Of a stretch of DNA of 64,000 nt, positions 4,451-59,400 are shown one piece after another (within the stretch, counting starts at the first letter, position 1; each line of letters begins with the position of its first letter). The DNA comes from Octopus bimaculoides (Eukaryota): NCBI RefSeq assembly GCF_001194135.2, contig NC_068998.1, positions 27,477,104-27,541,103 of the forward strand. Direction: 5' to 3'. The notes under the pieces are model-generated. The model did no database searches, was not told the origin of the DNA, and saw only the letters and a list, made by a program, of their open reading frames with translations. Both the position numbers and the translations under genes were made by a program.

Positions 4451-4741
4451 GCTGGGATCTAAGCAGCAAAAAGAAAATTTAAATTTAGATCTTTAACCCT
4501 TATAAATGAAACTTCCCCAATACTAAATAGGAAATATACATAGTAGATATCATAACCCCATACCCACAGTTTACATAGGTAGAGTAGAATAGTTAGTGGG
4601 CTGTTATGTAGATAGATGTGTGTGGGTGTATATATATATATATATATATACACACTCTCTNNNNNNNNNNNNNNNNNNNNNNNNNNNNNNNNNNNNNNNN
4701 NNNNNNNNNNNNNNNNNNNNNNNNNNNNNNNNNGTTTTTTT

Positions 4742-8200: not shown

Positions 8201-11200
8201 GAGGTAGGAGCTCTCTGAACTTTGCCTTGGCTATTCTTATTCTAATAGCTACACTCTCAGAGCATCCACCTCCGCAACTGACTTGGTCACCTAAGTAACG
8301 GAAGCGGTCAACTACTTCTAGTTTTTCCCCTTGGCATGTGATAGAATCTGTTTTCTGCACATTTTCAGTGTTTATTGCCCCTGTGCATCTGTCACACACA
8401 AAAACTATCTTCCCGGTTAACCTTCCTTTGATGCTGCTGCACCTCTTATGTGTCCATAGCTTACACTAGGTACATCTTATGGAGTTTCTACCTATGCCTT
8501 TTCTATAGATCGAGCAGGACCATCTACCTGAAGGGATTTGTGGTTTGTCTGCCTTCCTACTTACTAAGACTTTGGTTTTTGCTAGATTGACTCTAAGGCC
8601 CTTTGATTCTAGACTTTGCTCCCACACCTGAAAGATCTCCTCTAGTTCTGGTAGTGACTCTGCTATTAGAGCAAGGTCATCAGCAGAGAGGAGCTCCCAG
8701 GGGCAGCCTGTCTTGAATTCCTCTGTTTCTGCCTGGAGGACTATGATGAATAAGAGGGGACTGATCGTTGTTGGACCCCTACTTCTAACTGGAATTCTTC
8801 ACTATACTCGTTGCCAACCCTCACCTTACTGACAGCATCCTTGTACAGCTCTCACTAACCACTCATCTATCTCTAGTTTCTCCATTGACCACCAACCAGG
8901 TAAGGGATTGGGCACCCTGTCAAAGGCTTTCTCCATGTCACGAAAAGCCAAGTACAGAGGTTTATCTTTGTCTTGGAATTTGTCTAGCTACAAGGCTACA
9001 TCATACTCCAGTATCAGCTTTAGCATGGTTTCTACAACTGGATGCCCTTCCTAACACCAACCACAATACAGTATGTACTGGGTGATTTTTTTGCATGCCA
9101 CCAGCACGAGTGAGGTTACCTAGTAAGTTGCAAAACATGAAAAGAAAGGAAAAGTGGGGGAAAAGTCCCCATGACTAGGTAGGGCAGGGCAAGTATTAGG
9201 GAGGAGGTGGCTTTATATCAAGTGTTAGAAGGCTAAAGTATGAGAGATAAGCACAGGTGTCATGCTAAACCTTACAAAGGTGACAGAGGATCAAGAAATG
9301 TGGCGCATTTTTGTACTACCCACCACAACAGAATTGAGATCTTAAAACTGAAGTGCCACATTGGTGTAAGTACTGGTACCACATAGACAGCACAGGTGCT
9401 GGTGCCACCTAAAAAGCACCCTGTATACTCTGTAAAGTGGTTGGTGTTAGGAAAGGCATCCACCAAACCAAAACAGATTATGGAACTTGGTGTGGCTCCT
9501 GGCTTTGTCAGTTTCTTTCAAGTCATCCAACCCATGCCAACATAGAAAACAGATGTTAAATGATGATGATGAAAACACTTCTATGAGCAATGTTTTCTAT
9601 TAGGTTAATTTTTATACAGACACACACTGTTAATACATTAAGTAAACATTTCTTCAAATCTCCATTGGAAACTACAGAATGTATTTTTCTAACAACTTTA
9701 TATTTAGCTTGATACAGGTCAATGATTTCCTGATCCGCTGCAATGAGTACCTCGACAGTTTTTACACAATTCTAAAATGGGAAGAAATAGGTCCCTCACT
9801 CAGGTAAGTGTTCCATAAATAGTCGTTTAACAACATAAACAGTTATGTTATACACATCATGCTGTAATACAGTATGCACAATATATGGACATCAGATGAT
9901 CTACACACTCACGAAACTTTAAGTAATGTGGAGCTTTGATTAAAGCCATTCTAGCTATGACCAACCTGTCTTTCTTTTTCAAACATAGTTTGTCTTGGAT
10001 CACATTATCCAAGAAAACTGTTTTTAATTTTGTACATCCCTTATTATCCATTCACTATAACCTATGCATCATTAACATGTTTTTACTCTCTTAGACTCAT
10101 ATCACACTCCATTATAAATTATACTACCTTTCCTACTGTCTATATCTCATTTATAAAGGACAAATAGCACTTTCCACATTAATATGCATGCACACGCCTT
10201 AGCAGTGTAGGGAACACGGTTTATTGTAGTCTACTACAACCTATAAAACTAGCCATCCACAAACACTTAAGCACTTCAGTAACCTGATCTTATTCCTCTG
10301 ATCCAGACAAATACAAATATACCCAATGTTCTTGGTGAGTTGGGGGTGACTACCATCTTTAATCACTCCCAAACATTTGAAATATTTTTCATTGACTGTC
10401 ACTACCCAGGCTGCCACAACAACCTTTGAACATACAAAATTAAGTTGAACAGCAAAGCACTTGCCATATATTCTGATTCCCACACTTAGGTCTCTAAACC
10501 AGCAACCACTATATGGCAATATATTTTCTCATTCTCACACCCAACTCTCTAAACCAGTGACCATTGTATGGCAATATATCTTCAATCCTGCTACCTAAAC
10601 TGCTGTGGTGCTATACATTCATTCTCACGCACAGCTCTCTAAAACAACAACCACTCTTGTACTATATATTTATCACAACTGACAGCTCTCTGAACCAGTA
10701 ACTACTGCATGGCTGATCCTAGGTGACATTTTCTACACAAATCAGTTGCTGTTTAAATTAACACAGATCAACCAAATTTTTTATCAAAGCTGTTCCTGCC
10801 ATGACCATCCCATCCCTTTTTCAGGCATTTGTACTTTAGACTTACATTAACGAATATGTCCTTTCAATTCAGTAAGGTCTGGTTTGGGGAAAATTTGTCT
10901 TGTACACAGATTTTAACAAAGTAAATTAAAAGTGTTGATAAAATTACCTCATTAAGTTTATCTTGTATTGACCCACAATTTTGTTTTCCAATATGTCATA
11001 AGTTCAAATCCCACTTAACCACAAAACTCCAATTACTTCCCAGTTTATATTTGTGAAAAATAGCTGCCATCTCTAATTTTTGGCTAAGTTGGTTACTCAT
11101 GAAGAGATCCTATACATGCAAGATATCTTCCACAATTCAATGTTGAATATAATGTCTAAAATTTAAGGACCGATGTATGAGAGTCAGGAAAAAGAATTGC

Positions 11201-36984: not shown

Positions 36985-37780
36985 TTAGTAGGTGTTTTTT
37001 ATAAACCCTGTCAATGGAGGAGGTCCAACTGGCATACCAGTCGTTTGAGGACCTGTAGTGGGGGGTATCATTGATGGAGTTGTTGAAGGTGGACCCATGG
37101 GTGGAGGAAGATTTGTTGAAGGTAAACTCATGGGTATATGAGATAACACAGGAGCAGTTGTAGGAGGTGCAATGGAAGGAGTAGAAGTTGAAGGAGGACC
37201 CATGGGGAGAGGACCAACTGAAGGAGGTCCCATTGGAGGAGGGCCTGTTGAAGGAGGTCCCATGGGAGGAAGGCTTGTTGAAGGTCTCATGGGGGGAGGT
37301 CCCATAGGAGGAGGGCCAGTTGAAGGAGGTCCCATAGGGGGAGGGCCAGTTGAAGGAGGTCCCATAGGGGGAGGGCCAGTTGAAGGAGATCCCATAGGGG
37401 GAGGACCAACTGAAGGCCTCATAGATGGAGGGCCTGTTGGAGGTGGTCCCATGGGGGGAGGACCAATTGAAGGATGTCCCTTTGGGGGAGGGCCAGTAGG
37501 AGGTCCCATAGGGGAAAATACACCAAAATGATGTGATGTGTTTGCAGTGGCTTGAGCTTGAGAGCTAACAGGACTTGAATATTCTCGTCTTTTAGAATTT
37601 AATTGTGGATCTGAGTAGGAAGATGCTTGGAGAGGAGTTGAAGGTGAAGTAAGAGGAACAGTTGAGGAAGGAGGTGAAACTGTACTTCGGTTCATTGAAT
37701 CTGGCCAATTCGTCTGAGGATAAATTCCTATTATTGAGTACAACTCCTTAAGTATAAGCAGCACTGTGTCTTCAGATTCC
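36985..37780 (-). CDS. SEC23IP/DDHD2: DDHD-gene last exon: [15 protein letters not shown] plus a ~250-aa Ser/Pro-rich tail with [10 protein letters not shown] repeats
   Basis: tttacag acceptor; open frame to TAA at 36987-36985. Confidence 0.92.
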
Positions 37781-40700
37781 CTGTAAACAAAAAAAAAACA
37801 AACTGGATAGACATGGGTTCACAGCAGACTTAATCATAAGTGTTGTTTACACTGGTATTAGCTTTTCTGAATCAAATTGCATTATGGTGTTCTACCACTA
37901 TCTTCTCTAGCAAGGCATGAAAGCCAAAATGTTTTAATGTCATTAAGTCTGTGATGTTCATGTCTTTCCTATGAACAGTGGTGACAAATGAGACTTCCAG
38001 ATAGGGTCTTTCTGTTACCAGTGTAATCTCAAAACTAATACCATAGCTGGCATATATTCTTGAATACTTTACCTTCTATACATATCATTTTAACATCCAC
38101 TTTTCTTATGCTTGCATCAGTTGGACAAAGTTTTATTGAGGCAGTTTTTCTACAACTAGATGCCCTTCCTGTAGCCAACCTTCTCAGGTTTCCAAGCAAG
38201 GTAACATTGTAACATTTTTCTCATAGCCAGACATTTTCACAGAATACTCAAAATGAAAGACACTGTGTGACAGTAACATTCATTTATAACCATCATGTGA
38301 TGTTAAGACTAGGCGACACAAATACACATGGTTGGGAAGCTGTATTCTTAACCATAGCCATGTCTGTGCAGACATGTATATTTATATATGGTACAATTTT
38401 TGCAATTACTTGCTACATTGTGCTTACTGGGTAGTCTACAGTTCACATTCTGCTCTTCTTGTTAAAGATATTGAATTCAATGTTCTTGTCCCTGCAGCAA
38501 TTATTAGTCTGTTAGTTTGTAGTAAATATTAAGCTGAAAATCTGCAGATATAACAATCACCAACCAAGGCACTGCACCAATGTATCAACTACATGGAGAT
38601 TGGCAACAAGACACTATATTAATGTACCTTCCTTTGAATCATTGCATGAAGACAAAGTCATCTATGATACCCTTACAACTCAATCAGTTTCAAGATATAA
38701 TTATTAAATTCATTAGAAGTCAAGATGTAAGTCAGAAACAACACTAAATTAGTACAAATACTGTATGGTTAATGACTTACCAATAGCAGCCATGACTAGT
38801 CAGTGCAAATAAATAATCGTTGAAGCTTTCAATAGGTTTCTCCTGTAAGACATAGTCAATTCTGCGTCCTTCATTTAACAGACCCATGCTGATTTCCTCA
38901 TCATGACTAGAAGCAATGGCTGAAAAATTTTTGAAAGAAGATATAGAAAGAAAATTTCAATGAATATAATCTTCAAACAGAAAACTTGATATATTTTAAA
39001 CATATATAATCAAATAAATCTATCAGACTACTGAAGTAATCATTAAAGTAAATCAGTTTCTATTTGGAGATCAATTCCTACACCCACCAGTTAACCAAGG
39101 TATTTTATTTTTCAGCAACCACAAAAATTGAAGTCTTAACTGTAAAACACAGAAGTATCCTAAATTATTTAGCTACTTGTCAATAGTAGATGCTACCGTA
39201 AACTAATTTTCCTTTTAGTTTAGCTGTGTAGAGGTGACAAACTGAAAAAACTATTTCAACTGATCCATCAAATCTACTCAATGGATACTAAAGAGATCTG
39301 TTTATATATTACAATATTAGTTTATATTTTTACTTTTGTTATGGCATAGTCTGGCGGATTTTCTGCAGTTATGATCTTTACAGATCAATGTAGCTTCAAC
39401 ACCAACACTTGCAGGGAAAATGTTATTGTGAAGGGAATTTTAGAGGATTGACATTTTGAGGATGAAGGAATAGGAAAAGTAGCCAGCGCAGAAGCTATAC
39501 AATGAGGGACAAGAGGAAAGGCAAAAGCAAGGAAACTTAAAAAAAATATAGTCTCAGTAGTTGTGGAGATAATGAAACAAAGACTATTAATTCGAAAGTG
39601 AAATATAAAGTAGGTTTTTTTTTGTTTTTTGTTTTGTTTTCCCAGAAAATCTGTCCACTTACATGCAGTTTCACAAGATTCATCATCAGTGACAACTAAC
39701 TGATTAATAACCTCACTCATTTCTTTTTCTACATGTTGCTCCAGTGTTTGGTTTGAAGTGTGAGCTCGTGCAAATTCATTGATTGAATTCCAGGTACTCT
39801 TCAGAGAATCCAGAAATCTTTGCTTCAGATCAGAACCAACTCGGCTGAGACTTTCTCGCAATTCTGAAATTAAAAGAGACAAAATATCATTCCCCATTCA
39901 ATGTTTTGATACTTATTAACAACCTTTTTGGATTGATGCTTAAATGCATCTTTGTTTATTATTATTAAATACCAGGGATTAGCTATGTAGTACTTCATAT
40001 AAATCAGAAAAATCATCTTTACTACTAAATAAAGATGAGGGTGGTGGTAAAATAGCAAGGCAGTGTTTTGTTTCATCTTACATTCTTAATTCATATCTGA
40101 CCATTCATAATTCTAGGGTCAATAAAATAAGTACAAGGTCTCAATTCAATATACTCTTTCACATTCCCCTTGTAAAAAATAGCAAGATATATTTATTATT
40201 ATTATTATTATCAACAGTGGTGAATTAGCAGAAACTGTACACTCATGTAGTAATTAGTTATAACTCTTTATGTTCTGTGTTCAAATCGCATAAAGTCAAC
40301 TTTATCATCCCTCTGGTGTTGATAAAAAAGTACAGATAATAATTGATTATATTTCTCTCCAAAAATTGGCTTTGTAAATGAAAACTGTTTCTATTATTAC
40401 TAGAATATTTGTCCTGAGCTTGTCTTAACAGTGATTCAAGTACACTAACATACAAAACCTTCATATTAGTTTCCACACTAATTTACTAATAAATAATAAA
40501 CAATCTTTCAACACATTAAACTGTCAACATTCTACACATGAAGTAGAAAAAAACCTTTTATATACTGAATTCTCAAATTTCCAACAAAATCACATAAATT
40601 CAATGTACTACAGATATAAAATCACATAAATTCAATTCACCCCAAACAAAGCATTAAGATCATATAGCATCGTCACATATTCTTTATTGTGCCCTACTCA

Positions 40701-43700
40701 ATTTACATAATTTCCATCAAATATACATGGATTCTGATAAATGTGATCTTAATACAACCACAGAAGGGAGCAAATCCAGCATCTAGTGGGAACATGTCTC
40801 CCAGATTCCTACAGCAGTCAAAGCAGAAAGAGTGAGGTATATATCATCATCATTGTTTTAACATCCACTTTTCCATGCTTGTATAGGTCAGATGGAATTT
40901 ATCGAGGCAGATTTTCTATGACCAGCTGCCGTTCCTGTAGCCAACCTTCACCTGCTTCCAAATAAAGTAATATTTCCCTATGACCAGACAGGTTTTCACA
41001 GAATACTAGAAATGAAGGACAGCACTTGCATGGTTATGGCTCTTGTTTACAACCTTCATGTGATATCAAGGCAAGGAGACACACACAAACACACACACAT
41101 TCTTTTGTCCTTTTATTTGTTTCAATCATTTGACTGGCCATGCTGGAGCACCACCTTGAAGGGTTTTAGTTGAGCAAATCAACCCCAGAACTTATTTCTA
41201 TTGATCTCTTTTGCCAAACCACTAGGTTACGGTGACATAAATACACCAACACTGGTTAACAAGCAGTGGGCGGGGNNNNNNNNNNNNNNNNNNNNNNNNN
41301 NNNNNNNNNNNNNNNNNNNNNNNNNNNNNNNNNNNNNNNNNNNNNNNNNNNNNNNNNNNNNNNNNNNNNNNNNNNNNNNNNNNNNNNNNNNNNNNNNNNN
41401 NNNNNNNNNNNNNNAAGACACACACACATTAACAAGCTTCTTTTAGTTTCCGTCTACCAAATCCACTTGCAAGGCTTTGAAGAAGACACTTACCCAAGGT
41501 GTCACACAAGCGGGACTGAACCCGGAACCATGTTGTTGGGAAGCAAGCTTCTTACCACACAGCCATGCCTAGGCTCCTTTTAATTTCCATCTACCAAATC
41601 CACTCACAAGGCTTTGGTTAGCCCAGGGATATAGTAGAAGACACTCGCTCAAGGTATCACACAGTGGGACTGAACCCAGAACCATGTGATTGGGAAGCAA
41701 ACTTCTTGTCACACATCTATGTATCTATGCATAAAGTTTCAGCTGATTAACCCTTTAGCATTCAGATTACTCTCTCAAATGTAATGTTTGTTTTTTCACA
41801 TTGTTTTAAATTAATCTTGTAGCTTCAAAGTTTCGGTGATGTGATTGTTTACTTTAAGAATGATATTGTAGGGCAGATGTTAGAGGCTGGATGTGGCTGG
41901 TTTGAACATAAAACAAGTAGAATATTTGGGCCAGATATGAGTCAGTTTAAATGCTAAAGGGTTTAAGATGCACATACATTGTATACATATTTCTTGTTTC
42001 CCCCAAGATAAAAACCTACAACTGTCTGGGTAACAGTGTCCAGTGAATGCTTTATAGTGTGTGCAATATTGTTACTTAGTCCCAGAGGAAGCCTTTGTTC
42101 AAAGGCATTACAGTCAGGACCATTCCGTCTCTTTTCAGACATTGCATCACATTATTCAATTAATCCTTTTAAGACAGCAGGATAGAGCAGCTGCATAGAT
42201 TTCTTGTTGGCTTGTGTTATCTTTTATCTGTTTCAATCATTAAATTGCGGCCATGCTGGGGCACTACCTTAAAGAACTTTTAGTCAAGTGAATTGACCCC
42301 AGTACTTATTTTTTGTAAGCTTGGGACATAAACAAACCAACTCCAGTTGTCAAGCAGTGGTAGGGGACAAACAGACACAAAGACATACACATACAACAGG
42401 CTTCTTTTAATTTTCATCCACAAAATCCACCCACAGGGCTCTGGTCAGCTCGAGGCTATGGTAGGTGCCATACAGTGGGACTGAACCTGGAACCACGTGG
42501 TTGGGAAGCAAGTTTCTTACCATCCAGCCATGCCTGTGCCTTATGCTTGTAATATATTTCTAATTCTAGACATGTGCTTTACTTATAATATAAAAACAGA
42601 AAATAAAGATGAGGGAAACAGCAATTAAGACTCACCTAAATGAAGACGTTTTCGGCCTTTATGATGTGGTATTAGTACTGGTTTGTGGTTACTAGCTTGG
42701 GCATTCACAAGTGGCTCAATACGATAGGCCTACAACATGTAAACATAATATATTGAGATGTTGAGCTCTAATCAGAATATACTCTCACATCACAAATTCT
42801 ACATTACACTTGAAATAGATTATGTAATTCCATGTTATTATATGAAATTGGTCATGGTTTCAAGAGGAAATTATTTTACTGTCGACTGTTTGTCTAATCA
42901 TTTAATACTCAACTAAAAAGTAGTGAAGATTTGTTTTAAAGACAGATTGAATTATATGCATGACTATGTATTTAACTGACCCTACAGAGGAATCTCATCT
43001 GTTGATATTAATATCAACATTCATTTGTGTATATACTTAGAGTTGGACAGCTACATCTATATACGGTACGGTGAATTACCATGCTTATATCATGCATTTT
43101 TTTAAATTTTAACATTCAAAATAATTTTAATGAGTAGGTAATTGTTTCTGCTGACTAATACTAATTACACATCGTTGGTTTGATAGCTAAATGCGGTATT
43201 ATTTTCTTCTATATATAATGACAGAAATTTAGCAAAATCAAGTTCTTTAACCAACAAACAAGTGGAAGTATAGTCATTCCACTTGCCAATGTTGCATGAA
43301 AATATCCAAAACAAAACTCCCTACTGTCATTAAAATAATTGCTGTGATTTCAAATTCTAAGTTTTAGACTTCCATATCAATAATAAAGATGGCAGTTAAT
43401 ACAGGATAATTTTCAAGATTACTTTGCAATAAATTTTTGATGTTTGCAACAAGTTAATGGTAAAATGCCAAAATAACTTACCACAGAATCAAACTGGAGA
43501 TACAGCCAAAAGAAGATGCAAAGAAAGTATAAAAAGTTATCAGAATGGTTTCAATACATTTAAATTATTTAAAATAAAAATTAAAAAAATTACAGAAAGC
43601 TAAAACAAAAGACTTAATACATTTACTGATAATCTGTTACACAAAAGAACCAAGATAAACAATATTATTTATGAACTTGTTAACAATATGTGTTGTCTTT

Positions 43701-46700
43701 GATGTAAATGTGTTAGTAATAATAACACTATTAAACTGTTTTAATAAGTCATAATACTAAGTGAATTTCAAAATAGCTTATAACCTATTTATATACTGCC
43801 TAGCAGTATATAAATTTATATACTGCCTAGCAGTTTTACTTGCAACATATATACAACAAAACAGGTATCAGTGACAGTGCAGAAAACAGCTCCAAACTTA
43901 AAGGAAACTATAATTATATTTGTTCAGAATTCTTTCATATGGACATAAACAAACTACAAATGGTAATGTCAGCTTTTAAAAGCATATTTCATTAAATAAG
44001 TATCTTTTTAATAACATTTAAGATAAGATAGGTTGATGTCATCATCATCATCATCATTTAACGTCCACTTTCCATGGTGGCATGGGTTGGATAGTCTGAC
44101 AGGAGCTAGCTGAGCAGAAGACTGCACCAAGCTTCAGTGTCTGTTTTGGCATGCCTTTTATAGCTGGATGCCCTTCCTAACACCAAGCACCTTGCAGTTG
44201 TTGTTTTTTCGAGTTCTACATCTGCTATAGAACAAGAGAGAGAGAGAGAGATCTTCAAATTGCATCCATGCAGACAGGCTCCAACAACAGAATGCTATTT
44301 AACAAGAAAAAAGATTTGGTTTGCAATAACTTACCGGATGGAAAATGTTGAAGACTCTGGAACATGTGGGAAGGCAGAATTCTTCTCCTACTTTTTCTAC
44401 CCCACGTACAGCTAGAAATACTCCAATAGGAGAGCCTAAAGCAAAGAAGCTAACAGGATGAAAGAGTAACTGTGGATATTCCACAAAGGGTTGTCCAGTT
44501 CCAGCCACACCCATCAAATAGTCAACAGAAATCGATGTCTCACATTTTAGCAATCTAAGAGAGAAAAATAAAGAATTGTACAAAACCATGAAAATTAACA
44601 CTAAAAGATGCTTTTTACTTCTTTTATAAATACTTTTCCATTTTAAGAAGAGCATTGTAGCTCACTTGAAGCGTTATAGTACCAAAGGAAAAGAAAAGGG
44701 GAAATAAGAATGCAGAAAGTTTTACAAAAACCTTTATATTCCAGGCACAAAGGCCCATTGTCAGAAGAAAGCAGTCTTGGAAATGTCCTGCTACACTGAT
44801 TCCTTTACCTTATTCAAACTCCTAGGTTTTAGGTTAACAGCACTAGCAGCAACTCTCCAACTGTTGGTTGATGCAATGTATAGTCATGTGGTGGTGGTGG
44901 TGGTGGCATATATTATGATGCTGGTTGCAATCACCATGTTTATAGAGGAGCCACTGGCTCAACTCCAATTGGCTGTTAATTTTGGGATTGAGACAGTGGA
45001 TCAATATAGCTTCTTTTATGTGTAGATTTCCAGTCACATCAACTAACAGCGGGTGCGTTGCCTACACCAGCAGTCGGAGGTTTGCTTACACCAACAGTTG
45101 AAGAGTGGCTGCTACTGCTGCTAACCTAATGCCAAGGAATTTGAATAAGGTAACAGAATCGGTGTGACTGGACATTTCTCAGACTGCTTTCGTCTGAGGA
45201 TGGGCCTTAGTGCCTGAAATATAAAAGATTTTGTAAAATTTTCTGCATTGTTAGAAGCTTTCTTACTTCCCCTTTTCTTTCCCTTTTAAATTGTGTTAGG
45301 TGAGAGTCATTTCCTAGGATTATTGAAGTGAGCCAAATAAATTTAAAGACCATTAAATAGTACGTGTGTGTTTTAGTCACAGCCTGGACCATGGAACATT
45401 TTATAGTTATTCAAAACAGAAAAAGCAAAAGCAACAAGCCCACTGTCAGGAGGCCTTCTTTCTGCTTCAAAGTGCTTATAATGTCTAATATTATCCATCT
45501 AAAACAGCCAATTTATTTATTTCATTATACAGACTATTTTGCATATGTTCATTTCCTTCCCATCTTGACATTTATGATAGCTTTTTTCCCTCTACTTTCT
45601 CTAGTTTCAAGTTCTGCTCATTGACGAATTGAACAGATTTGTACGCAAAAACTGAAGTCAACTTGGTCACTTGTCTAAGCAATAGGAACCTCACAAAATT
45701 TCAAGGAAAACTCACTTTGTTTTTAAATTTGTTTCTGCTTCTTTCAGTTTCTCTTCCTCTTTTCTTTTCTTCTCAGCTTCTATCTTCTGCTTCATGGCAG
45801 CCTCTTCTTCTTGCTATACAAATGACACATTAAACAATTATTAATAATACTAAACAAAATAAAATTTTTACTATATCTTCAATCAGAAGAATAACTATTT
45901 CTAGATTTTTCCTGACTGTTTGAAAATTTATGAATTCAAGACAAATGATTTTAAGTGTCCTTAAAATGGTACAAACAACTATTTCATATATTGTACATAA
46001 CACATCTGTCTCTACAAAGTCTGAGTTACATGCTTGTGATGGAAATATACTTTAATCATGAACAGCTGTTAACTCTGTACAAAATTTAGTAAAATACTGT
46101 TTTCACCAGTTTCATAGATTCAGTCCACTTTGCTGATATAGTGGTAGTTGATCATGCACAACCCTTTCAACATGGACATATCACATTGGTCTATTTTGGG
46201 ATCATATTGCACACAAAACTATGATGTTATTTGCTGCATGGAGTGAAGTGTGACAATTCGGGCATGTTGTATCTATTTTAATATCCAGACTGCTCTTGCA
46301 TGATTGGAGATTTTGGTGGTGTCTGTACACTGACATTCACTAAGGAAACATGTACACTGGACCTAGTGTGACTATTGATATTGCAGTTGTGAATCTTGTA
46401 AACCTGTTCACTTTGGCTAGAAGAGGTTAGTGTTATTGATTTGTTTAGATATTTCAAGGTTATCACCCTGTAATGTACAAGTTATATAGACAGCAGTAAT
46501 AGACTGTGTTCTTTATATATCTATGTGGTTTTTAGATTTAATATTAGGCTTTTGTTGTAGAGAAAGGAGGTGTTGGGAAGGGGTGCATATGCACATACAT
46601 GCAACCTATATGAGGTGGAGAACATTTCTGAAGTATTTCACATTTTTTTTAATGTTTCTGAAAGAGATAGGAAGGAAGCTAAAGCAAGATTAGAATATTT

Positions 46701-49062
46701 CATAGACAACATTTCTCACAACATATAATGATCTTTAGTTTCAATATCCTCTACATGTAAGGTAAAGGTTACAGATAAGCTGTAAAACTATTATTTTATA
46801 TGTATGCAGAATGTTGCTTCCTTTAAGTATGTAGCATAAAATGATGGATTTTGTTGTTGTTAAGTCAGGTGATGGGGAATTCTTCCCATCAACCTACTCA
46901 TTTCTTTGGAAACAAACCACAATGTAAACTACCACCTCCTTCATCATTATGACATTTCATGGTGATGATTACCAGTACAGCTTCCATAAATCCATTCTGT
47001 CTTCTTTGTTACTTACCAGTGACCTTTGATGCTAAAGAACTTTAGTAAATTCTTTAAACACGTCTAATATAGGAATGTACTCTCTAAATATGCACCTATG
47101 GGCTTCACCTCTTACACAAGTCACGCTATTACTTTTCAACAATCTCTATCCTGATTCAACCCTATGACTAATCCCTTTTCTCTACCCACTTCTTTGCCAT
47201 ACACCACCATCCTCCTCTCTTACCATCTCTCATCCCTTTGCCTAGAGGATCATCACCCACTCTCTCTTCTGGTCTCCCTCAGCTATAGGGGCCTTGCAAG
47301 ATACAAGAGCATTAAGAGCATTATCACTGGTGCCAACAAACAAAAAGCTCCCAGTACAATCTGCAAAGTGGTTGGAATTAAGAAAGGGATCGAGTTAATA
47401 GAAACTACACAAAAGTAGACATTAGTGCATGACACAGGCCTCCAACTCATCATCAGACCCTGTCTAACCATCCAACCGTTACCAGTGTGGAAACTGAATG
47501 CTAGATGATGATGATCATCAGCAGTAGTATTGATAGTCAGTACTTGACAACATTATTAGATAACACACCTTGACACTCAAAATTCATGAAGCATTCTAAA
47601 TCTTTTAATTGATACAGGCATGGTGTAAGGAAGGTCAAAACAAACTATGGAACCTGGTGAAGCCCCTGGCTTTGCCAGTTCCTGTAGAGCCATTCAACCC
47701 ATGCCAGCATGGAAAACGGATGTTAAATGATGATGATGATGTGTTTAAGAAGTTCACTTCACAATTACATAGTTTTGAATATGATTCCATTGCAAGGCAC
47801 TTTGGGCATGTCTCCATTGCAAAGCACTTTTTCAGAGCCTCAAACTGACTTGGATGGAATTTATGACATGGAACCTGTGTGAAAGAGTGTTCTTTTTTGG
47901 TGTGAGACAATCTGTCATCTAGTTCACTACCATCACCTAAGCCTTGGGTGTCCATTTTGAAGCAAGCATTCAGGGAAGGTCCCTGGATTGAGGATAACTT
48001 CCATCCACCTATTTTGCAGATCCAGACTATGCCATGCAAAAAAATGAAATATTTGATACTGCAATTCCTTATATCTGACCTGTTTTAATTCTGTCATCAA
48101 CTTCTGAAGTTTCTTTCGTGGTCCCATAGGTAAACCAAGACATTTCAAATCCTCGTCAGTACACATACTCTAGAAAATACACAAAAAATTATATTATTTA
48201 GAAAATAGTTTCATCCAATTGTTCAATCATTTCATTAAAAAAAAAATCAAAGTATTCTTGGAATAAATGAGCTAAATAGTTTCAGATTCATATTTACTTT
48301 TACTCAGTTTATATATTATATATAGCATATATACCCTAATAAGTTTTTATATAACATATACCCCACCCCCAACAACTTACATTATATGTACACAACAATT
48401 TTTTTTTTCTAATATAACATATACTCAGCAAATTATCTGTGGTCAACAAGTTCTTAATATGTGACCCTTGATGCTCTTATATTCATTTATGTTCTATAGT
48501 GTAAAGTGATAATTAGCGGGAATCCTGAGTTACCTCCACCGCAGTTTCACCTTATCTTCCTTTCCAATTGAAACCCACTTCAGAAGCACCAAAAAATGAT
48601 AAATAGCTTTAAACAGGATACTGCCACTCTGACATCAATTACTTAACTGCTGAAGAATATTTAATTTCCTAAATTAAAGCCAACTAATTTTATTTTGGTC
48701 TTATTCCTAAATGCTTTGGTTAATTTTAAATTTTAATCAGCCTTTCTTTGGACATAATTATCTATATATATAAAAATGAGAATGTGTGTCTGCCTGTCTG
48801 AATCCCTAAAACTCGAGAGCTACGCAACCAATTTCATTCAAATTTTACAGATGCCTTACTTAGGGCTCCAGTTGTGTTTTAGTAAAAAAAAAATTTTAAC
48901 TTCTTGCAGAGTTCGAGCCCACAGCAACATAATATTTCCTCCACTATTTAAGTATTACGTGTCAGAAGTGAAACAAATACACCCATGCCAAATAATTTCA
49001 CTTTAAAAATGAAACTATTCTACTGACTGAAACAATCACATTCCGATACTGTGAGTGAGTGA

Positions 49063-49114
<52 letters not shown>

Positions 49115-52100
49115 TATATGTATACATATAGATGTATATGTACACGTTATTCCACTAACTGAAACAATCACATTTCGATACTTTCAGAGAGAGAGAAAGA
49201 GATGTATATGTATACATATATATGTACACGTATATGCATAGATATATATATATATAGATAGATATAGATCTATATGCATACATGTATATGTATACACATG
49301 TGTAGATGTATATATATATATAGATGTACATGCAATATGTACACATATATATACATGCATACAGATATCTATACATATNNNNNNNNNNNNNNNNNNNNNN
49401 NNNNNNNNNNNNNNNNNNNNNNNNNNNNNNNNNNNNNNNNNNNNNNNNNNNNNNNNNNNNNNNNNNNNNNNNNNNNNNNNNNNNNNNNNNNNNNNNNNNN
49501 NNNNNNNNNNNNNNNNNNNNNNNNNNNNNNNNNNNNNNNNNNNNNNNNNNNNNNNNNNNNNNNNNNNNNNNNNNNNNNNNNNNNNNNNNNNNNNNNNNNN
49601 NNNNNNNNNNNNNNNNNNNNNNNNNNNNNNNNNNNNNNNNNNNNNNNNNNNNNNNNNNNNNNNNNNNNNNNNNNNNNNNNNNNNNNNNNNNNNNNNNNNN
49701 NNNNNNNNNNNNNNNNNNNNNNNNNNNNNNNNNNNNNNNNNNNNNNNNNNNNNNNNNNNNNNNNNNNNNNNNNNNNNNNNNNNNNNNNNNNNNNNNNNNN
49801 NNNNNNNNNNNNNNNNNNNNNNNNNNNNNNNNNNNNNNNNNNNNNNNNNNNNNNNNNNNNNNNNNNNNNNNNNNNNNNNNNNNNGTTGCAGACCTCCTTT
49901 GGGTCTTTTTATTATCACTACGACACACATAGTCCCCAGTTGGTAACATTGATTTCAAGGCCCTCCTAGATGAGAGACTGGCATTCCACTTAATGTCTAT
50001 GTTCCATGCTGGCATGGATTGGAGAGTTATTAATGTAGAAATATAGTATCGTAGCTACTAACAGTTGAGGGTTGCGTAGTCTAGACGGCGTTTTTAGATT
50101 TCATTATTCTCTTTAACCCGGGCAAAGCCGGGTATTTCTGCTAGTATAAGAATAAAAAGAGCCAATGAAAGAGTCTCTATGTGATTGTTGAGTTAGCTAG
50201 AAAACAACATCCAAATTTCTCTCAAATTACAACGCTTTGCAATCTTAGAAAAAGAACACATTAGATAATACAGTTTTAGATATACTGCAGCTGGATAAAA
50301 AGCTGGATTGATCAAGGCTGTAATGCTTTTGATTAACAGTCTACTCTATTGGGGTTAAACAACACACAAACCCCCACACAACTTTACCACTGTTCCTATA
50401 CTCATTACTCAATATGCTTTTTGTTGTTTTACATTTTCTGAGTTCAAATTCAATCAAAATCAATAGTTTACAGTAGGTGTAGCATATATTTCTCAAACCA
50501 GTAGAATTCACAGAAAATAATTTTTGAAATCTAAATTAATTGTCTGGCACTAACTGTATCAGTTATAACAGACCAATCATTAGTAAACTACTGATCCTTC
50601 AGTGTTTTGTTTCAATGCTGTATTGTATTGCAGAATATGTCTTTAGAGTTTATGCAACACTATATGTAGAAAGAGATGTAAATACCTTCTCTGTATATAC
50701 AAAAATGTCATGGACAGGAAAAGAAAAATCAACCAGATTAGTTTTAATCTTGTGTTGAGATTTCTTTAGGGAATGAGTAACCTTTGTAACTATCCATGGA
50801 GACCCGGCATATAAATTCACTATTACTAAGGAGCTTCGGCAAATGGGATAGACCAGTTGCATCTTTTATCTTTTACTTGTTTCAGTCATTAAACAGTGGC
50901 CATGTGTTTATAGATTTTTTTAGTCAACACTATATGTATAGACATATGCAAACACCTGTATATAGAATATCTCCATTCACAAAGATATTATATACATAAG
51001 ACAAGGTATTTACTTGTCTATAGAGTGCTGGTCAAAATCTATAGACTTACCTTGCAACAGAGTATGGTATAAGTCTATAGTTGTTCTAGAATAAAATTAG
51101 TAATTGTAGTTTGTCACATCAACATAACATGTAATGTTACTATATGTAAACTAATAAGTATTAAAGTTCATTTCAATACAACTAAAACAAAATACTTTTT
51201 TTAAATAAGAAAATGAAAATCTCACCAATGCATCAATATCAATTTGTTCATTTTTAAATATTTCTATTTTATCCTGAAGTCCAGCTTTAGCCAGTAAGTC
51301 TTCAAGATTCATCTCAGTTTCTTGGTTTGTATCTTCTTCCAATGCATTTGCCTTAAAACCAAACAAAAAATTCCAGTCATGACTAATTACTTTTTAAATA
51401 TTTAAATCCATGTTAACTTTTCAATAATCAAAATGGCAAACACTAAATTAAACTCAGCAATGATATCCAATCAAAATTTGCAACTAGATTTGCACTAACC
51501 ATTTTTAATATTGCCCTTTCTTTTATGCAGAAGAAACATGATTTTATTCCCAAGATTTATAATTAGAATTTGGTCATAGAAAATGCAAGAGTTATTAAAA
51601 ATAAATTTCATTTATTAAACAACATTTAATCCTGCTATTTCAAATGCATAAAAAATAATAACTCAAACACAAATATTCTGATCTATCTTCAGGTCACACA
51701 ACATTCAAATGTAGCCTGAGCATGTTCCCATACTAATGCAAATCATTGCGTGGAAATGACTGAAATATCATGTAAGTGTAGATCCAGTTAAAATGTCAGT
51801 CAACAAATGAGTCTTTGTGGTTACCTGATCAGCTAAAAGTAGTAAACAAATCTTTAAAATACACCCTACTTGTATTAATGAATAAGGAGGATACATTAGA
51901 TAAATGTAAGCCTAAATACATTATTCTTGAAAAATATTCAAACGGAATGTAATAGTTGGAATGCCTTCATTAATAGGCTAAGCTCAATCAATGCTGACTC
52001 TAGGCTAAGCAACAACACAAACTGAAAACAGTAAATATGTGAATAATGTTCATTCACTAAATATTCTTCAAACATTAATATTCATACATACAATTGGCAG

Positions 52101-55100
52101 CATTGAGACCAGGATTTGTTACTGGAAAGCAAAATTGTTGACTGCTCAGTCAAGCTGTGCTAAGAAGCATCATTCACTAGCAATTTTCCACAAAATTATG
52201 CCCGACCATTGTGCTGTTCATTTTTGAAGGACTGAGGGAAATATTATCTTACTTGGAAACAGCTAAAGGTCGGTGACAGCAAGAACATCCAGCTGTAGAA
52301 AATCTGCTTCAATGAACTTCATTCAACCATGCAAAAGTGTGTGTCAAAATGGTGAAACACTAAATTGTGTTCACCCTATAAATCAGTAATTCTCAAATGG
52401 GGTCCATACAGAATTTTATGGGGTCCAAGCAAAGAAAATAGCAAATTGGAGATCCACAGTATTATTTTAAGATACATGAAAAAATTCTGCTTTAGACACA
52501 TATAATGCATGAAACAACTAGGTTTCTTACTCTAATGCTTAACATGTTTGCTGCCACTGAAACGGGATCTCTCAGAAACTGCTATTGGGAATCTATATAA
52601 GTGAACATGTGAAGAACAAAATAGGAATTTTGAAAGAATTAGCAATAAAACTCGTTTTTAAACACTGAATAGCTACAGGGGCTTATCAAAGTCAAAAGGG
52701 TTCATAGGTAAAAATGGTTGAGAACTACAGCTCTAAATAATGTTCATACATTAAAACATTGCTGTGTGGGAGCATGACAGAAACACCAACATGGGAACAT
52801 GCCCAGCAAATGAATCATCATTTAACCTTTCACAAAGCCCTTTCAGATTCTATGTAGCCCCAGAGTAGTTCAAACATGACAAGACTGAAATTGCAATGAC
52901 TCAGTTATGGACATGGCTTTTGTTTAAATTTGGATGTCAGCTCTATATTTCTGTACCACAAAATTAATTAGGTTCACAATTATGAAATTTGTTCATTGAA
53001 TCACTGTAAGGTGTTGCCTACATATATCGCCAAGAAAATTATCCTACGTAGAATAAACATCATCAAAGTGTTCATCCTATGTGGAATAAACATTGCTATC
53101 TTTTATCTGTTCCAATCATTAGATTGGCCATGCTGGGACAACAAGCCTGGTACTTATTCTATTGGTCTCTATAGCTGAACCACTAAGTTACAAAGACATA
53201 AACGCACCAATACCAGTTGTCAAGTGGTGGCGGGGGGACAAACAAAGATACAAAGACACACACACACACACACACACAGACAAATTTACACATCAGTTTC
53301 CATCTACCAAATTCATTCACAAAGCTTTGGTCAACCTAAGGTTATAGTAGAAGACACTTGCCCAAAGTGCCATGCAGTGTGATTGGGAAGCAAGCTTCTT
53401 ACCACACAGCCAAGCTTGTGCCTATATTAAGCTATTTATCCTATGCGTATACAGCAGCATTAAACTGGTTTCTAGGGGGTGGTTTTACAGTCATTTTTTT
53501 TAATGACAAAATAACAAAGATGTTTACCTTGTCTACTTCTGGAACAGGAACTGGTTCAGGACTAACATCCTTGCTTTTGTCTCCTAATTTCTGATTATTT
53601 TGAGGATTGTGCTGATGCAACAACAAATCAAAAAGAATAGATGAACCTGAAATTGTAGAATATGAGACATATTAGAATTAACTGGATTAGAGTATGCAAT
53701 GAATTAAATGGGAACATTATCTTCATTATAATGAGGGTATATATACTGAAGTAATGATTTCCATCTACATTCTGTTTTTAGATCTGACAAGGATCAAATA
53801 TATTCTACATATATAAGTTCAATGAAATAAGTATCAGGCATAACTGTAGTTGATTCCTTAGAAATTTATAGTCTTATGCTTCTACAAAACAATTATTATT
53901 ATTATTATTATTATTATTACTACTACTACTACTATTGCTATTATTGAGAGAGAGAGAAATGCATGCCATTGAGGTAACACTGGGGTACAAATGTACAAAG
54001 CCCAAGATACCCACATGACTACCCGTGTGATAAGGGTACACCAGGCACATGCATCACAACCATATGTGTGCAATATAGTGATTTCATATCAAGATAAACA
54101 GCGCATGACCTTGTTAGAATTTTCTTCAGGTCAAGTAGCCCATCCCACTCAAATGGTCCTAGAATAAGGGTTGTTTAAAGATGATGAATGAAACACCCGT
54201 TTCCAGAGGTGAATTATTCAAACCCTCAAAGAATTCCTCTCAACACATGGCTATGATGCCTCCCCACTACTCCTGCTCAAGATCAAAAATGCACATAACG
54301 TCAGCCACTAAGGGACATGCTCGACTGGTGAAGGTCAAGCGACAAGCAAATCTGTGGTATTGAGCAGAATATTTGCTGTAGACCATCTTTTATACCAAGA
54401 CAAAACATGTACATGATAACACTTCCAATTAGCTAAGATCAGAAGCCATGAGAGCCACTGCCTGGTACTGCATCCAGGCATTTATCATCATCATCATCAT
54501 TATTACTATTAAGAATGGCAGTGAGCTGGCAGAATTATTAGCACACTGAGCAGAATGCTCAGTCGTACTTCACCTGTCTTTATGTTCAATTTCTACCAAG
54601 ATCAACTTTGCATTCATCCTTTTGGGATCAATAAATTAAGTACTAGTCAAGTACTGGGGTCGATATGATCGACTTACCCACTCCCCACAAATTTCACGAC
54701 TTGTGCCTAAAGTATAAAGGATTATTATTATTATTATTATTATTATTATCATTATTATTAAGGTGGCAAGCTGGTAGAATTGTTAGCATGCTGGGTAAAA
54801 TGCTTAGTGGCATTTTGTCTGTCTTTGTGTTCTAAGTTCGAATGCCAGTGAGCTTGACTTTGCCTTTCATTCTTCCGGGGTCGATAAAATAAGTACTAGC
54901 TGAGCATTGGGGTCAATGCAATCAACTAGACACCCTCCCCTGAACTTGCTGGCTTGAGCCAAAATTTGAAATCATCCTTATTATTATAATTATATACATT
55001 ATTAATATATAGGTATTAGAAACATTACATAAAATATTTCAGTATTACCAACATTACATACAATATATTGGTTTTACATACAATTATATTGATAGAATAT

Positions 55101-56352
55101 TTCTGTAATGATTAACAAGTAGTTAAAATGTTCTTTCTTCTTAATCCTATGTGTCACAGGCACATAAATCACATACCGAAGGATTATATCAACTGTTGTC
55201 TCACAAGTTGAGAGACAACAGAACTGTTGTTGATGTAATACAAAAACTTGACATGAAGAAATGAGGTTGTTATTGTAAAGTTAATAGAACACTAACCTAA
55301 ACTATGCCCAGATACTGACACAGTTCCTTTGAAAGTAGGGTTTCTCAATAAAAATAATTCATAGAGACGATTAATTTCAGAACCAACAGTATCACACATT
55401 GTCTGTAGAAAAGAAAGAGAAAAAAAAAATCACATTTTATGATGACAAGATCTAGTTGGATACTTTGAACCCCATTATTTTATCATGCCACACACTTTAA
55501 TCCTTTTGTAAATATGTTAACCCTTTTGTTACCATACTTCTGTTGAACTACATTGCATTTGGTTTAATTAATTTTGAAAATAATAAAGAATTTTGTAAAG
55601 TATAGATGGCAGGGGAAATGCGGTGGGACAACTACTCTGACTCATGGGGCTTGCACTTGCAGATAGCCACCACCACCCCAATAGTGGTGAGCAGGGATAT
55701 GGTCCAGCAGCCAAGAACGTAAGAGGCCTCCACTGCCACAGGTATAATTAATCAAACTTGTTTGATCACATTTAAACTTCAGAAAAATGTAGCAAATGTC
55801 ATTATTACAAACACAAAGAAGCTGGTATTCAAACAAATTAACAAGGAATTTTAATGGGAAATTTAAATTTAGATCACTTTATATAGAAAAAGTGTATCAT
55901 AACAGGGTTGGTATCAAAAGGGTTAATAAAAACAAATATAATTACACTTAACTCTCAAACAGTTACTACTACAACAAATAATCTTAGAAATATAGAAATC
56001 AGTTTGAGAGTCATTGTGAGAGTCAATGTTAAATGAAAGGGTTGTAATTCAGATTTGTGATATTAATCAGCAAAAGGAATATATTTACCTGACAGTATTT
56101 GGGACTGGTATAAAACAAAATATCTAACAATGTATCATTGATAAATTGCCGAAGCTTCTGCGTGCTTGGAAGGGTTATTGCTTTCAGTTGACTGAAGAGA
56201 AAGAAATTGAGAGTAAATGCCAGTTAAATACAAGTCAAAAAGGGGTGAAATGTTAACAGGGATAATCAGATCCAACACACTCTACCATCACCTTTTCTGT
56301 ACTGCCAGTTATCGCGCGCGCGCGCGCGCGCGCACGCACACGCACACGCACA

Positions 56353-56401
<49 letters not shown>

Positions 56402-59400
56402 GAAATATTTGTTACTAAAATCCATCCCTCTCTCTTATTCCCCATCAATCTCTCCAACCTCGGTCACACTGCTCCAGCCACCATACTCTTGCTCCTTTCA
56501 CCCACTCATCCTGGTTCTTCTATCATCTCTCTCTCTTTTATTCACATTGCCTAGAAGGAATAGAAACACTGCTGAGTACTAGCTGGGACTACAGTAGGAA
56601 TAATCAGCAATCACCTGAAGTCATGATTTGCTGGAATATTACCCATACGATCAACAAAATCTGACCAATCACACCTTCACATGGAATAGACTCCAGTGAT
56701 GATTCCAATTTTTGGTGCGCTTCCTTCTGAGCCTACCAATCAGTATAAATTTGACATGCCATAACTAGAGAGCATTGACAGAGATGATAGGAGATGGCCA
56801 ACAGATATGATGGGCAACAGCTGACAACACAAAAGCAATGAACAGTCAGAAGACAGAAGACATTAGAAGTCAGTAGTACAGTGAGCAGCTAACTACACTT
56901 TATCTGCTGCTGCAATTACAAGAAGAATAACATTCAAAACTCTCTCAATGTTTTGTCATTTGTAGTAACAACATTTGTTTTCTGTGCATGAAAAGAATAA
57001 AATTTTGTTGATCAAAAATTGCAACAGACATCAGTGTTCTTCATACAGGACTCTTTAGTTTTGTATGTACAAGGCAACTTCAACAGGGCTGTTACCATGA
57101 TAAACTGCAGCCACTACACACTGTAATGTTGCTGGTAAATGAATAGAAATAACACAAGTTCAAGAGGACCCTTTATTCTTGTCAAAGACATTTCTCTAGT
57201 GCTGATGCTATGAAGAAATGTACCCAGTATGTACTGTAAAGTGATTGGGGTCAGGAAGGGCATCAAGATGACACAGCAAAAGTGTTAAGGCTGCTCCCCC
57301 TGATGAAGAGGATTGGCTTGCAAGAGCCCTATGCCAGTGTCACATAAAAAACATTTGTGCTGGCACCATGTAAGAGTGCTTATGCTGGTGCCATGTTCCA
57401 AACCCCTAGCACACACTGTAAAGTGGTTGGCATTAGGATGGGCATTCAGCCATAGAAACCAAGCGAAATCAGACTGGAACCTGATGAAGCTCTCCGGCTT
57501 GCCAGCTCTGGTTAAAATGTCCAACTCATGCCAGCATAGAAAACAGATGATGATGATGAGGGCAGTAATTCTGAATTTGAACTAACTCAGAACATGACAA
57601 CCTGTCTACTCATGCCAGTATGGAAAGCAGACATAAAAATGATAAGATAATTGCACTAAAGCCAATAAAGGAAGTTTTATAAGGTGGTTTGAGCTATGAT
57701 AAATAGCAGGCAAATTTATTTCAAATTACACTCCACTCTTTTGACAAAACATATGGGATGTGTGCCTGCAAAGATGACATGATGATTAGAGCTAATCTAG
57801 AGTTAAACAACAGTAGCAACAATTAAACAAAATCACGTAGTTCATAAAGAAGCCTGTTTGAGGTTGTTCAAGCTGCAAGAACTAGCAGTCAAATCTCACT
57901 CAAAACACATTCTACTATTTTAAAAATGAAAAGTTACATTGGATAATGTCTGTCCTGATTACATTAGACATGATAAAAGATAAGGTGGCCAGACTAGAAT
58001 GTCTTTGGATTTGCTCGATCAAGGAGCTAAATGACAGAAAAACCACACACTTGTTCAAAGGAGATTTACAGTAAATACATTCCAAGTGCAATATCAAAAT
58101 TTAATTCAAAATCCTTGTAAAATTAGATTGTATTTAATATTACATGTACCATTAATTCAGCATTAAAAAGAAACAACCCAAGTACTTACTTATCTATGCC
58201 AGTAGCTTCACTGTGCAATGCAGAATGCCAATGAACTGGCAGATATTCAACACGACCAACATAGCCTGATCTAATGCCTTCACTGAAGTGAGATTGTAAT
58301 AAGGTCTGTGAAATTGAACGGAAGTCATCAACTGAAGGGAAAAAAAAAAATGTTATCAATTCAACTGTGATTAATTAAAGTAGATATCACTTAACAAATC
58401 AACATTTTGACTGATCGTAAATACAATTAGAAATGAGAATTTAACAGCAATTTATATGGAATAACTTTACATTAAGGAGTGGAACATACAATTTTCGGTA
58501 ATTCATACTGCCTCATGATCCCAGCAGACAATGGAAAAGGCATTGACCCAGAAGATGGCAGGGGAAATGCAGTGGGACAACTACTCTGACTCATGGGGCT
58601 TGCACTTGCAGGTAGCCATCACCACCCTAATAGTGGTGAGCAGGGATATGGTCCAGCAGCCAAGAACGTGAGAGGCCTCCACTACCACAGGTATAATTAA
58701 TCAAACTTGATCACATTTGAACTTCAGAAAAATGTATCAAATGTCATTATTACAAACACAAAAAAATTAGTGAAGTAACTTTAAACTATAAAACAATATT
58801 ACTTACCGCATTCGACAATACTGCGGAAGCGTAGATCACAAACAGGTCCAATGCCATGAACTATAAACACAAGATGATCAATTTGCCCAGTTTCACCTAA
58901 AGAGGATGTAAGAAGAAATAATTGAAACTCATAAAATTCCTTAAATAGCCTGAAAATTCAAACCTACAACACCTTGGATACAAGAGAATAAAATTTCGAA
59001 ACAAAAGAAAGGAAAAAAATAAAAACAACAAGCACATCAATCTCATATATATATATATATATATANNNNNNNNNNNNNNNNNNNNNNNNNNNNNNNNNNN
59101 NNNNNNNNNNNNNNNNNNNNNNNNNNNNNNNNNNNNNNNNNNNNNNNNNNNNNNNNNNNNNNNNNNNNNNNNNNNNNNNNNNNNNNNNNNNNNNNNNNNN
59201 NNNNNNNNNNNNNNNNNNNNNNNNNNNNNNNNNNNNNNNNNNNNNNNNNNNNNNNNNNNNNNNNNNNNNNNNNNNNNNNNNNNNNNNNNNNNNNNNNNNN
59301 NNNNNNNNNNNNNNNNNNNNNNNNNNNNNNNNNNNNNNNNNNNNNNNNNNNNNNNNNNNNNNNNNNNNNNNNNNNNNNNNNNNNNNNNNNNNNNNNNNNN

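Follow-up and report, generated by a model that had tools for sequence, protein, structure and literature searches.

In plants, conserved coding microexons of 15 nucleotides (nt) or fewer are ancient, encode the cores of protein domains and are often absent from genome annotation, which leads to wrong protein models (Yu et al. 2022, PMC8831610). An example is the 9-nt mini-exon of invertase, an enzyme of family GH32, which codes for the D-P-N of the beta-fructosidase motif (PMC8831610; Simpson et al. 2000, as cited there). In animals, the neural eMIC/SRRM4 (Srrm234) microexon programme arose in bilaterians (Torres-Mendez et al. 2022, PMC8797185), and the features listed for eMIC-dependent exons include a UGC near the 3' splice site and a long AG-exclusion zone (PMC8797185). 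This report concerns a 12-nt exon that codes for Phe-Asp-Ser-Val (FDSV) on the minus strand of a 64-kb stretch of Octopus bimaculoides DNA (the whole of the analysed DNA, hereafter the window), within a gene for a phospholipase with SAM and DDHD domains. An earlier, sequence-only reading had proposed this microexon as a possible splice switch for enzyme activity. The analysis described here favours another view, held with a probability of about 0.78, that it is a very old coding exon, probably constitutive and sometimes missed by gene predictors, and not a splice switch.

The immediate surroundings of the microexon, in the order in which they are transcribed, are as follows.

44335..44554, minus strand: upstream exon of 220 nt, holding the start of the DDHD domain, with a phase-0 end followed by gtaagt
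43494..44334, minus strand: upstream intron of 841 nt, GTAAGT...AG, at position HP/x (the slash marks the intron) in phase 0
43496..43599, minus strand: AG-exclusion zone and polypyrimidine tract of 104 nt, ahead of the acceptor AG at 43495-43494
43482..43493, minus strand: 12-nt microexon TTTGATTCTGTG, F-D-S-V, in phase 0/0, with codons TTT GAT TCT GTG
43476..43481, minus strand: 5' splice site of the microexon, consensus GTAAGT
42730..43481, minus strand: downstream intron of 752 nt, GTAAGT...TAG (...tgttgtag), at position V/A in phase 0
42636..42729, minus strand: downstream exon of 94 nt, which opens GCC TAT CGT ATT GAG CCA (A-Y-R-I-E-P)

The upstream exon ends AAC ATT TTC CAT CCG (N-I-F-H-P) at 44335 and runs into gtaagt, the upstream intron closes with ctttgcatcttcttttggctgtatctccag (...tatctccag) directly before TTT GAT TCT GTG, and the spliced reading frame is in phase 0 at all three junctions. 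Pyrimidines make up 80 % of the last 30 nt before the microexon acceptor, and the AG-free zone holds one TGC, at 43520-43518, 27 nt upstream of the microexon (-27). The anatomy given in the sequence-only reading, that is, a 12-nt exon with NIFHP and AYRIEP flanks, phase 0 and a GTAAGT donor, was confirmed in full on the minus strand. Its other observations at this site also held, namely the long AG-free pyrimidine tract with a UGC about 27 nt upstream (104 nt without AG, with the TGC at -27) and the frame-neutral skipping of the exon, which is 12 nt long and in phase 0/0. A scan of the window against Rfam gave no match, and the sole repeat within 42000-45000 is a trivial 21-nt duplicate at 43787-43834.

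The 12-nt exon is a genuine coding exon. When both strands of the 64-kb window are scanned, AG-TTY-GAY-NNN-GTN-GT is found a single time, with 0.04 occurrences expected from shuffles; of the two in-frame AG-12nt-GT candidates within the 1605 nt that separate the flanking exons, only that at 43493-43482 codes for F-D-x-V. With the four residues in place, the local peptide scores 104.7 bits against the Pfam DDHD profile, up from 85 bits. It might still be held that the 12-mer is unused as an exon, the residues being taken from elsewhere or the gene copy lacking them or decaying, and that the Pro-to-Ser change, by which FDSV stands in place of the near-invariant FDPV, is a mark of relaxed constraint. 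That explanation is hard to credit at all, as the 12-mer is the sole F-D-x-V candidate both between the flanking exons and in the whole window, has consensus splice sites, and recurs in an identical arrangement in four other genomes. Moreover, the 15 exons of the window join in a single open frame of 789 codons in which every other catalytic and domain motif (GHSLG, RIDY, SHGCYW and ESED) is intact.

At its 3' end, the microexon has tandem GT donors 3 nt apart at 43476-43484 (TCT/GTG/GTAAGT), and its orthologues keep CCTGTGGTRAGT. The first of these, the GT at 43484-43483, would, if used, yield an in-frame 9-nt variant (FDS). It is conceivable, though unlikely, that the exon is constitutive and accompanied by low-level noise without function, in which the exon is at times skipped or spliced at the tandem donor 3 nt upstream (GTG/GTAAGT) to give minor in-frame variants; the FDS form could arise in this way, and exon definition is inherently difficult at a length of 12 nt (PMC8831610). 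Against it, the context of the upstream GT is poor (TCT/gtggta, vs TG/gtaagt for the donor downstream).

Four residues of the DDHD domain are common to the lipases and to Nir2/PITPNM, namely the D of H-x-x-D-P, the D of RIDY, the H of H-x-x-Y-W and the D of S-x-D, and alignment with both groups bears out the earlier claim that the microexon encodes the first Asp of the motif. This residue is Asp382 of the spliced product and is invariant in an alignment of 25 sequences, in which S167 and H521 of the product are at least 90 % conserved; the Pro and Val of the tetrapeptide position are nearly invariant among homologues. Human numbering was reached through P0207, a fragment of primate DDHD2 that comprises the last 162 residues of a 711-amino-acid (aa) protein and sets RIDY at D660, SHLCYW at H681 and the Asp of FDPVAYRIEP-M550 at 541. 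The placing of RIDY agrees with the known p.Asp660His, and FDPVAYRIEP, which we take to stand just before M550 in human DDHD2, agrees with every vertebrate sequence seen. The catalytic triad of DDHD2 is S351/D541/H681, and the D541A, H681A and S351A forms are all inactive (PMC12663969). Judged by alignment, the microexon Asp is both the first D of DDHD and the putative catalytic-triad acid, the equivalent of Asp541 of human DDHD2; its predicted importance exceeds what the sequence-only reading had claimed for it, given the D541 numbering and the dead D541A enzyme (PMC12663969). In addition to this Asp, which aligns with the triad Asp541, the window protein keeps the GHSLG, RIDY (D660) and SHxxYW (H681) of human DDHD2.

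An AlphaFold model of the Solemya orthologue sets FDPV at the turn between a strand, E422-427 (VFNIFH), and a helix, H432-440; the model is of low confidence, with a mean predicted local distance difference test (pLDDT) score of 58 and values below 50 just after the Asp, and it was used for secondary-structure context only. In alpha/beta-hydrolases, the acid of the triad usually sits at such a turn, and the modelled location of FDPV is weakly consistent with that role. The PDB holds no structure of a DDHD lipase; the DDHD domains there come only from Nir2/PITPNM. One peculiarity of the window lies next to the Asp. D-P occupies the microexon position in 224 of the 226 homologues, among them the closest relative (L001, with CCT) and even Nir2/PITPNM; the window codes FDSV instead (TCT, 43485-43487, minus strand). 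The Ser beside the catalytic Asp may be a true change of this lineage, a polymorphism or an erroneous base.

The age of the microexon can be judged from four other genomes in which it was located.

L001, contig of the closest relative (neighbouring exon 83 % identical), microexon start 14408: TTTGATCCTGTG, introns of 4143 and 1682 nt
L003, Solemya velum (bivalve), microexon start 25920: TTTGATCCTGTG, introns of 1102 and 779 nt
L004, Lingula anatina (brachiopod), microexon start 6217: TTTGATCCTGTG, introns of 238 and 230 nt
L006, Nematostella vectensis (cnidarian), microexon start 6810: TTCGACCCAGTG, introns of 247 and 88 nt

In the window and in all four of these, the arrangement is HP/FDxV/AYR, with an exon of 12 nt in phase 0/0 flanked by AG and GT. 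The sequence-only reading had put forward intron positions in orthologues as a check, and both positions, in the same phase, extend from Nematostella to molluscs. The annotated proteins of Solemya, Lingula and Nematostella all include FDPV, and the exon is already implicit in the public gene models of these three species. Beyond them, the two introns have separate distributions. The phase-0 intron at HP/x is common to Nematostella, Lingula, Solemya, L001, Capitella and vertebrate DDHD2/SEC23IP, whereas the phase-0 intron at V/A is present in Nematostella, Lingula, Solemya, L001 and L002 and is gone in Capitella, vertebrates, insects and an ostracod. In Capitella, which has the HP/ intron only, the tetrapeptide lies inside a larger exon. 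Vertebrate DDHD2 and SEC23IP likewise differ from the window gene in having the xDPV codons fused to the AYR exon, so that only the HP/ intron is kept and there is no microexon; in their genomic open reading frames (ORFs; P0052-60, P0184 and P0217), homology begins at LDPVAYR or FDPVAYR, and the P0184 ORF spans the single HP/ intron. Neither intron is present in insects or in the ostracod Darwinula, whose tetrapeptide is within a larger exon. The reverse arrangement is seen in L002 (a eukaryote; contig of Joint Genome Institute (JGI) metagenome 3300040954), which at 2418-2959 has the V/A intron without the HP/ intron, the mirror image of annelids and vertebrates. Since L002 keeps V/A only, and annelids and vertebrates HP/ only, the two introns have been lost independently of each other. 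The simplest reading of these distributions is that both introns, and hence the microexon, are older than the cnidarian-bilaterian split and were then repeatedly lost. The 12-nt exon would thus exist because two ancient phase-0 introns (HP/F and V/A) are only four codons apart, and its occurrence in Nematostella makes it older than the bilaterian eMIC microexon programme.

How such an exon would be handled by the cell, and by annotation software, may be outlined in simple terms. The HP/F and V/A introns, four codons apart, would leave between them a tiny exon that supplies F-D-S-V. The strong 3' splice-site region, which is AG-free for 104 nt and rich in pyrimidines, together with the consensus GTAAGT donor, would most likely drive constitutive inclusion, and every functional mRNA would then include the catalytic Asp. 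Aligners and gene predictors that jump over the 12 nt would, for their part, produce a protein that falsely appears to be without it.

Homologous sequences accord with inclusion of the exon. A tetrapeptide of the form x-D-P/I/S-V/I was found in 225 of 226 of them, the exception being a genome-derived model, and all of the transcript-derived homologues include it. The exceptional model, from Nucella lapillus (P0078, hypothetical protein ACOMHN_035029), reads FHPAYR, without FDPV and the catalytic Asp, whereas a gastropod transcript that is 83 % identical to it (P0077) reads FHPFDPVAYR, the four residues being the sole gap in the conserved core. The gap in P0078 almost certainly reflects a missed 12-nt exon rather than biology, the sole indication of a microexon in Nucella being that same four-residue gap in the model. 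The contrast between FHPAYR in P0078 and FHPFDPVAYR in the P0077 transcript upholds the earlier expectation that gene predictors are likely to miss this exon. Sixteen Logan transcript contigs from one species include isoforms of 843 and 849 aa, which differ at another junction, and FDPV is present in 16/16; because both isoforms are seen among them, such contigs do capture isoforms. The real isoform variation in the family, amounting to 12-18 nt, is in the linker between WWE and lipase regions and not at the catalytic site. It falls at the 62132 junction, where other species have a variable mini-insert (proteins P0062-P0077): the Logan transcripts are with or without GHSTSV (849 or 843 aa, respectively), the gastropod transcript has QTYK, and the Nucella model has nothing.

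The sequence-only reading had suggested, in contrast, that the microexon is tissue-regulated, e.g. by a neuronal Srrm eMIC factor acting through the UGC and the AG-free tract, with skipping giving a lipase-dead isoform that keeps its SAM and scaffold functions. Such a switch is improbable, although parts of the case for it are sound. Skipping would be neutral to the frame, and in human DDHD2 the loss of Asp541 abolishes activity (PMC12663969). The DDHD microexon is, like eMIC microexons, very short and frame-preserving, and the UGC at -27, the 104-nt AG-exclusion zone and the long pyrimidine tract of the window resemble the eMIC cis-code; a TGC lies within 50 nt upstream of the microexon at all three mollusc loci. 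A scaffold role apart from catalysis, as assumed in that reading, also has precedents in the family: catalytically inert Drosophila PAPLA1 still rescues Rh1 maturation (PMC4085702), and p125/SEC23IP has no appreciable phospholipase A1 (PLA1) activity (PMC9031518).

Several points weigh against constitutive inclusion. Among the 14 acceptors of the gene, that of the microexon has the longest AG-free zone (104 nt, vs 20-86 nt for the others) and is the only one with a TGC within 30 nt, and the Solemya acceptor is similar, with an AG-free zone of 81 nt and three TGCs. Given that members of the family have a catalysis-independent function, a dead isoform would not be pointless. In addition, inclusion near 100 % is inferred; the Logan contigs bear on it only if their species has the microexon; and assembled contigs mostly give the dominant isoform, such that a minor or tissue-restricted skipped form would escape notice.

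On the other side, the microexon, by its presence in Nematostella, predates bilaterians, in which neural eMIC microexons arose. Its age, greater than that of the eMIC domain and of the bilaterian neural microexon programme, speaks for the constitutive reading. The supposed cis-signals are also poorly kept: Lingula and Nematostella have no TGC in the 50 nt upstream, and in the closest relative, L001, just 25 nt are free of AG. No transcript was found to lack the tetrapeptide, which 225 sequences carry, and the lone sequence without it is a genome model. Lineages without the introns live without any such switch, and since the tetrapeptide is permanently fixed wherever an intron was lost, it would seem that no lineage needs a skipped form. 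Furthermore, removal of four residues from this turn between strand and helix could cause the hydrolase core to misfold and not leave a clean scaffold. Between the window and L001, no conserved intronic island was found beyond the exon plus ~3 nt upstream and ~7 nt downstream, and this absence of extended intronic conservation comes from a comparison that is uninformative, as the introns are saturated.

The UGC, considered as evidence of regulation in its own right, was rejected, because by chance a TGC lies within 50 nt upstream of 47-56 % of the AG dinucleotides in the gene span and the motif is not kept in Lingula or Nematostella. For the 14 real acceptors of the gene, a TGC within 50 nt was found at only two. 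A narrower version of the regulated model would have molluscs co-opt an ancient constitutive microexon as a tissue-regulated on/off switch for catalysis, possibly with enhancement in neurons through the UGC and the long AG-free zone, while other tissues would make a lipase-dead, in-frame isoform still able to serve in SAM and scaffold functions; it too is improbable.

Set beside the described systems, the exon that is favoured here as ancient and constitutive would have its closest known kin among the conserved microexons of plants. It appears to behave as those do, and it lacks one defining feature of eMIC microexons, namely an origin in bilaterians, since it antedates the eMIC domain and occurs in Nematostella. 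The UGC and the long AG-free zone of the eMIC type are not conserved in the orthologues of Lingula, Nematostella and L001, the DDHD microexon codes for a buried catalytic residue and not for a surface loop, and its donor is strong. With the invertase mini-exon, by contrast, the likeness is considerable. Both exons lie between two close ancient introns, with length, phase and position fixed over hundreds of millions of years, and both contribute residues to an active-site motif, an Asp followed by a Pro, as is the case in most species for the DDHD exon. In the invertase mini-exon, the Asp serves as catalytic nucleophile, and this mini-exon is skipped in response to cold. In both cases, inclusion relies on strong flanking signals, and gaps in annotation make the protein look defective, as for Nucella. 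The two differ in that the DDHD exon belongs to animals, encodes part of an alpha/beta-hydrolase-type lipase rather than of a GH32 enzyme, and is conserved from cnidarians to lophotrochozoans. As to the enzyme, a further relative is Drosophila PAPLA1 (CG8552), the single insect orthologue, which is of the same WWE/SAM/DDHD lipase family; insect genes, like that of the ostracod, differ in being without an intron on either side of the tetrapeptide. In the library searched, no literature was found that links microexons to DDHD1, DDHD2 or SEC23IP.

There are practical consequences to the existence of this exon. A pipeline that skips the 12 nt would deliver a DDHD lipase without its catalytic Asp, which could be mistaken for a pseudoenzyme or for a case in which one lineage has lost the activity. 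For cnidarian, brachiopod and mollusc gene models, a simple rescue rule would be to seek AG-TTYGAYCCNGTN-GT between the exons that end ...FHP and begin AYR.... Two phase-0 introns four codons apart that have been preserved for over half a billion years, and of which one or both were lost independently, would also be a useful rare-genomic-change marker. Should regulated skipping ever come to light, it would set the catalytic role of the family apart from its scaffold role; nothing here suggests that it occurs.

The host gene was modelled by tblastn with full-length homologues combined with a search for splice sites, and its main landmarks in the window are given below.

36988..62132, minus strand: window part of the SAM+DDHD phospholipase gene, with 15 exons that extend to a Pro-rich C-terminus
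55297..55402, minus strand: exon with the lipase GHSLG motif, which holds the catalytic Ser
38781..38919, minus strand: exon with RIDY (the second D, equivalent to human D660) and SHGCYW (the catalytic His, equivalent to human H681)

The spliced product scores 199.5 bits for the DDHD domain (Pfam PF02862; cut-off 28.3), over profile positions 1-258, and 28.1 bits for SAM_1 (cut-off 23) at residues 215-268, between the lipase motif and DDHD. The N-terminal exons that encode WWE fall outside the window, upstream of 62132, and homologues do have WWE (PF02825/PF23464). The best named relatives are proteins from Solemya velum (62 % identity) and Nucella lapillus, 'phospholipase DDHD2' of Lingula, an 'S23IP-like' protein of Mya and vertebrate SEC23IP. 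All full-length matches in protein searches are at 62 % identity or less, and the closest fragment is an 83 %-identical exon ORF of the relative L001. By its domains and relatives, the gene is that of a mollusc-like intracellular PLA1 of the DDHD2/SEC23IP/PAPLA1 type, its activity being a prediction, and it is the one invertebrate gene that corresponds to both DDHD2 and SEC23IP of vertebrates. Its last exon (36988-37780, minus strand) adds, after the DDHD domain, a long C-terminal tail of degenerate P-P-M-G-P-P-S-T-G repeats; Pro-rich tails are likewise found in gastropod homologues.

Elsewhere, the window contains reverse-transcriptase-like and other repeat-derived ORFs (2-376, 8196-8798, 57288-57581 and elsewhere), a recurring element that resembles a short interspersed nuclear element (translated motif ...NHFTV...) and many TA, GA and CA microsatellites. 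The GC content of the window is 35 %, and its assembly gaps comprise 2508 N, with runs of N near 4600-4740 and 59046-60100.

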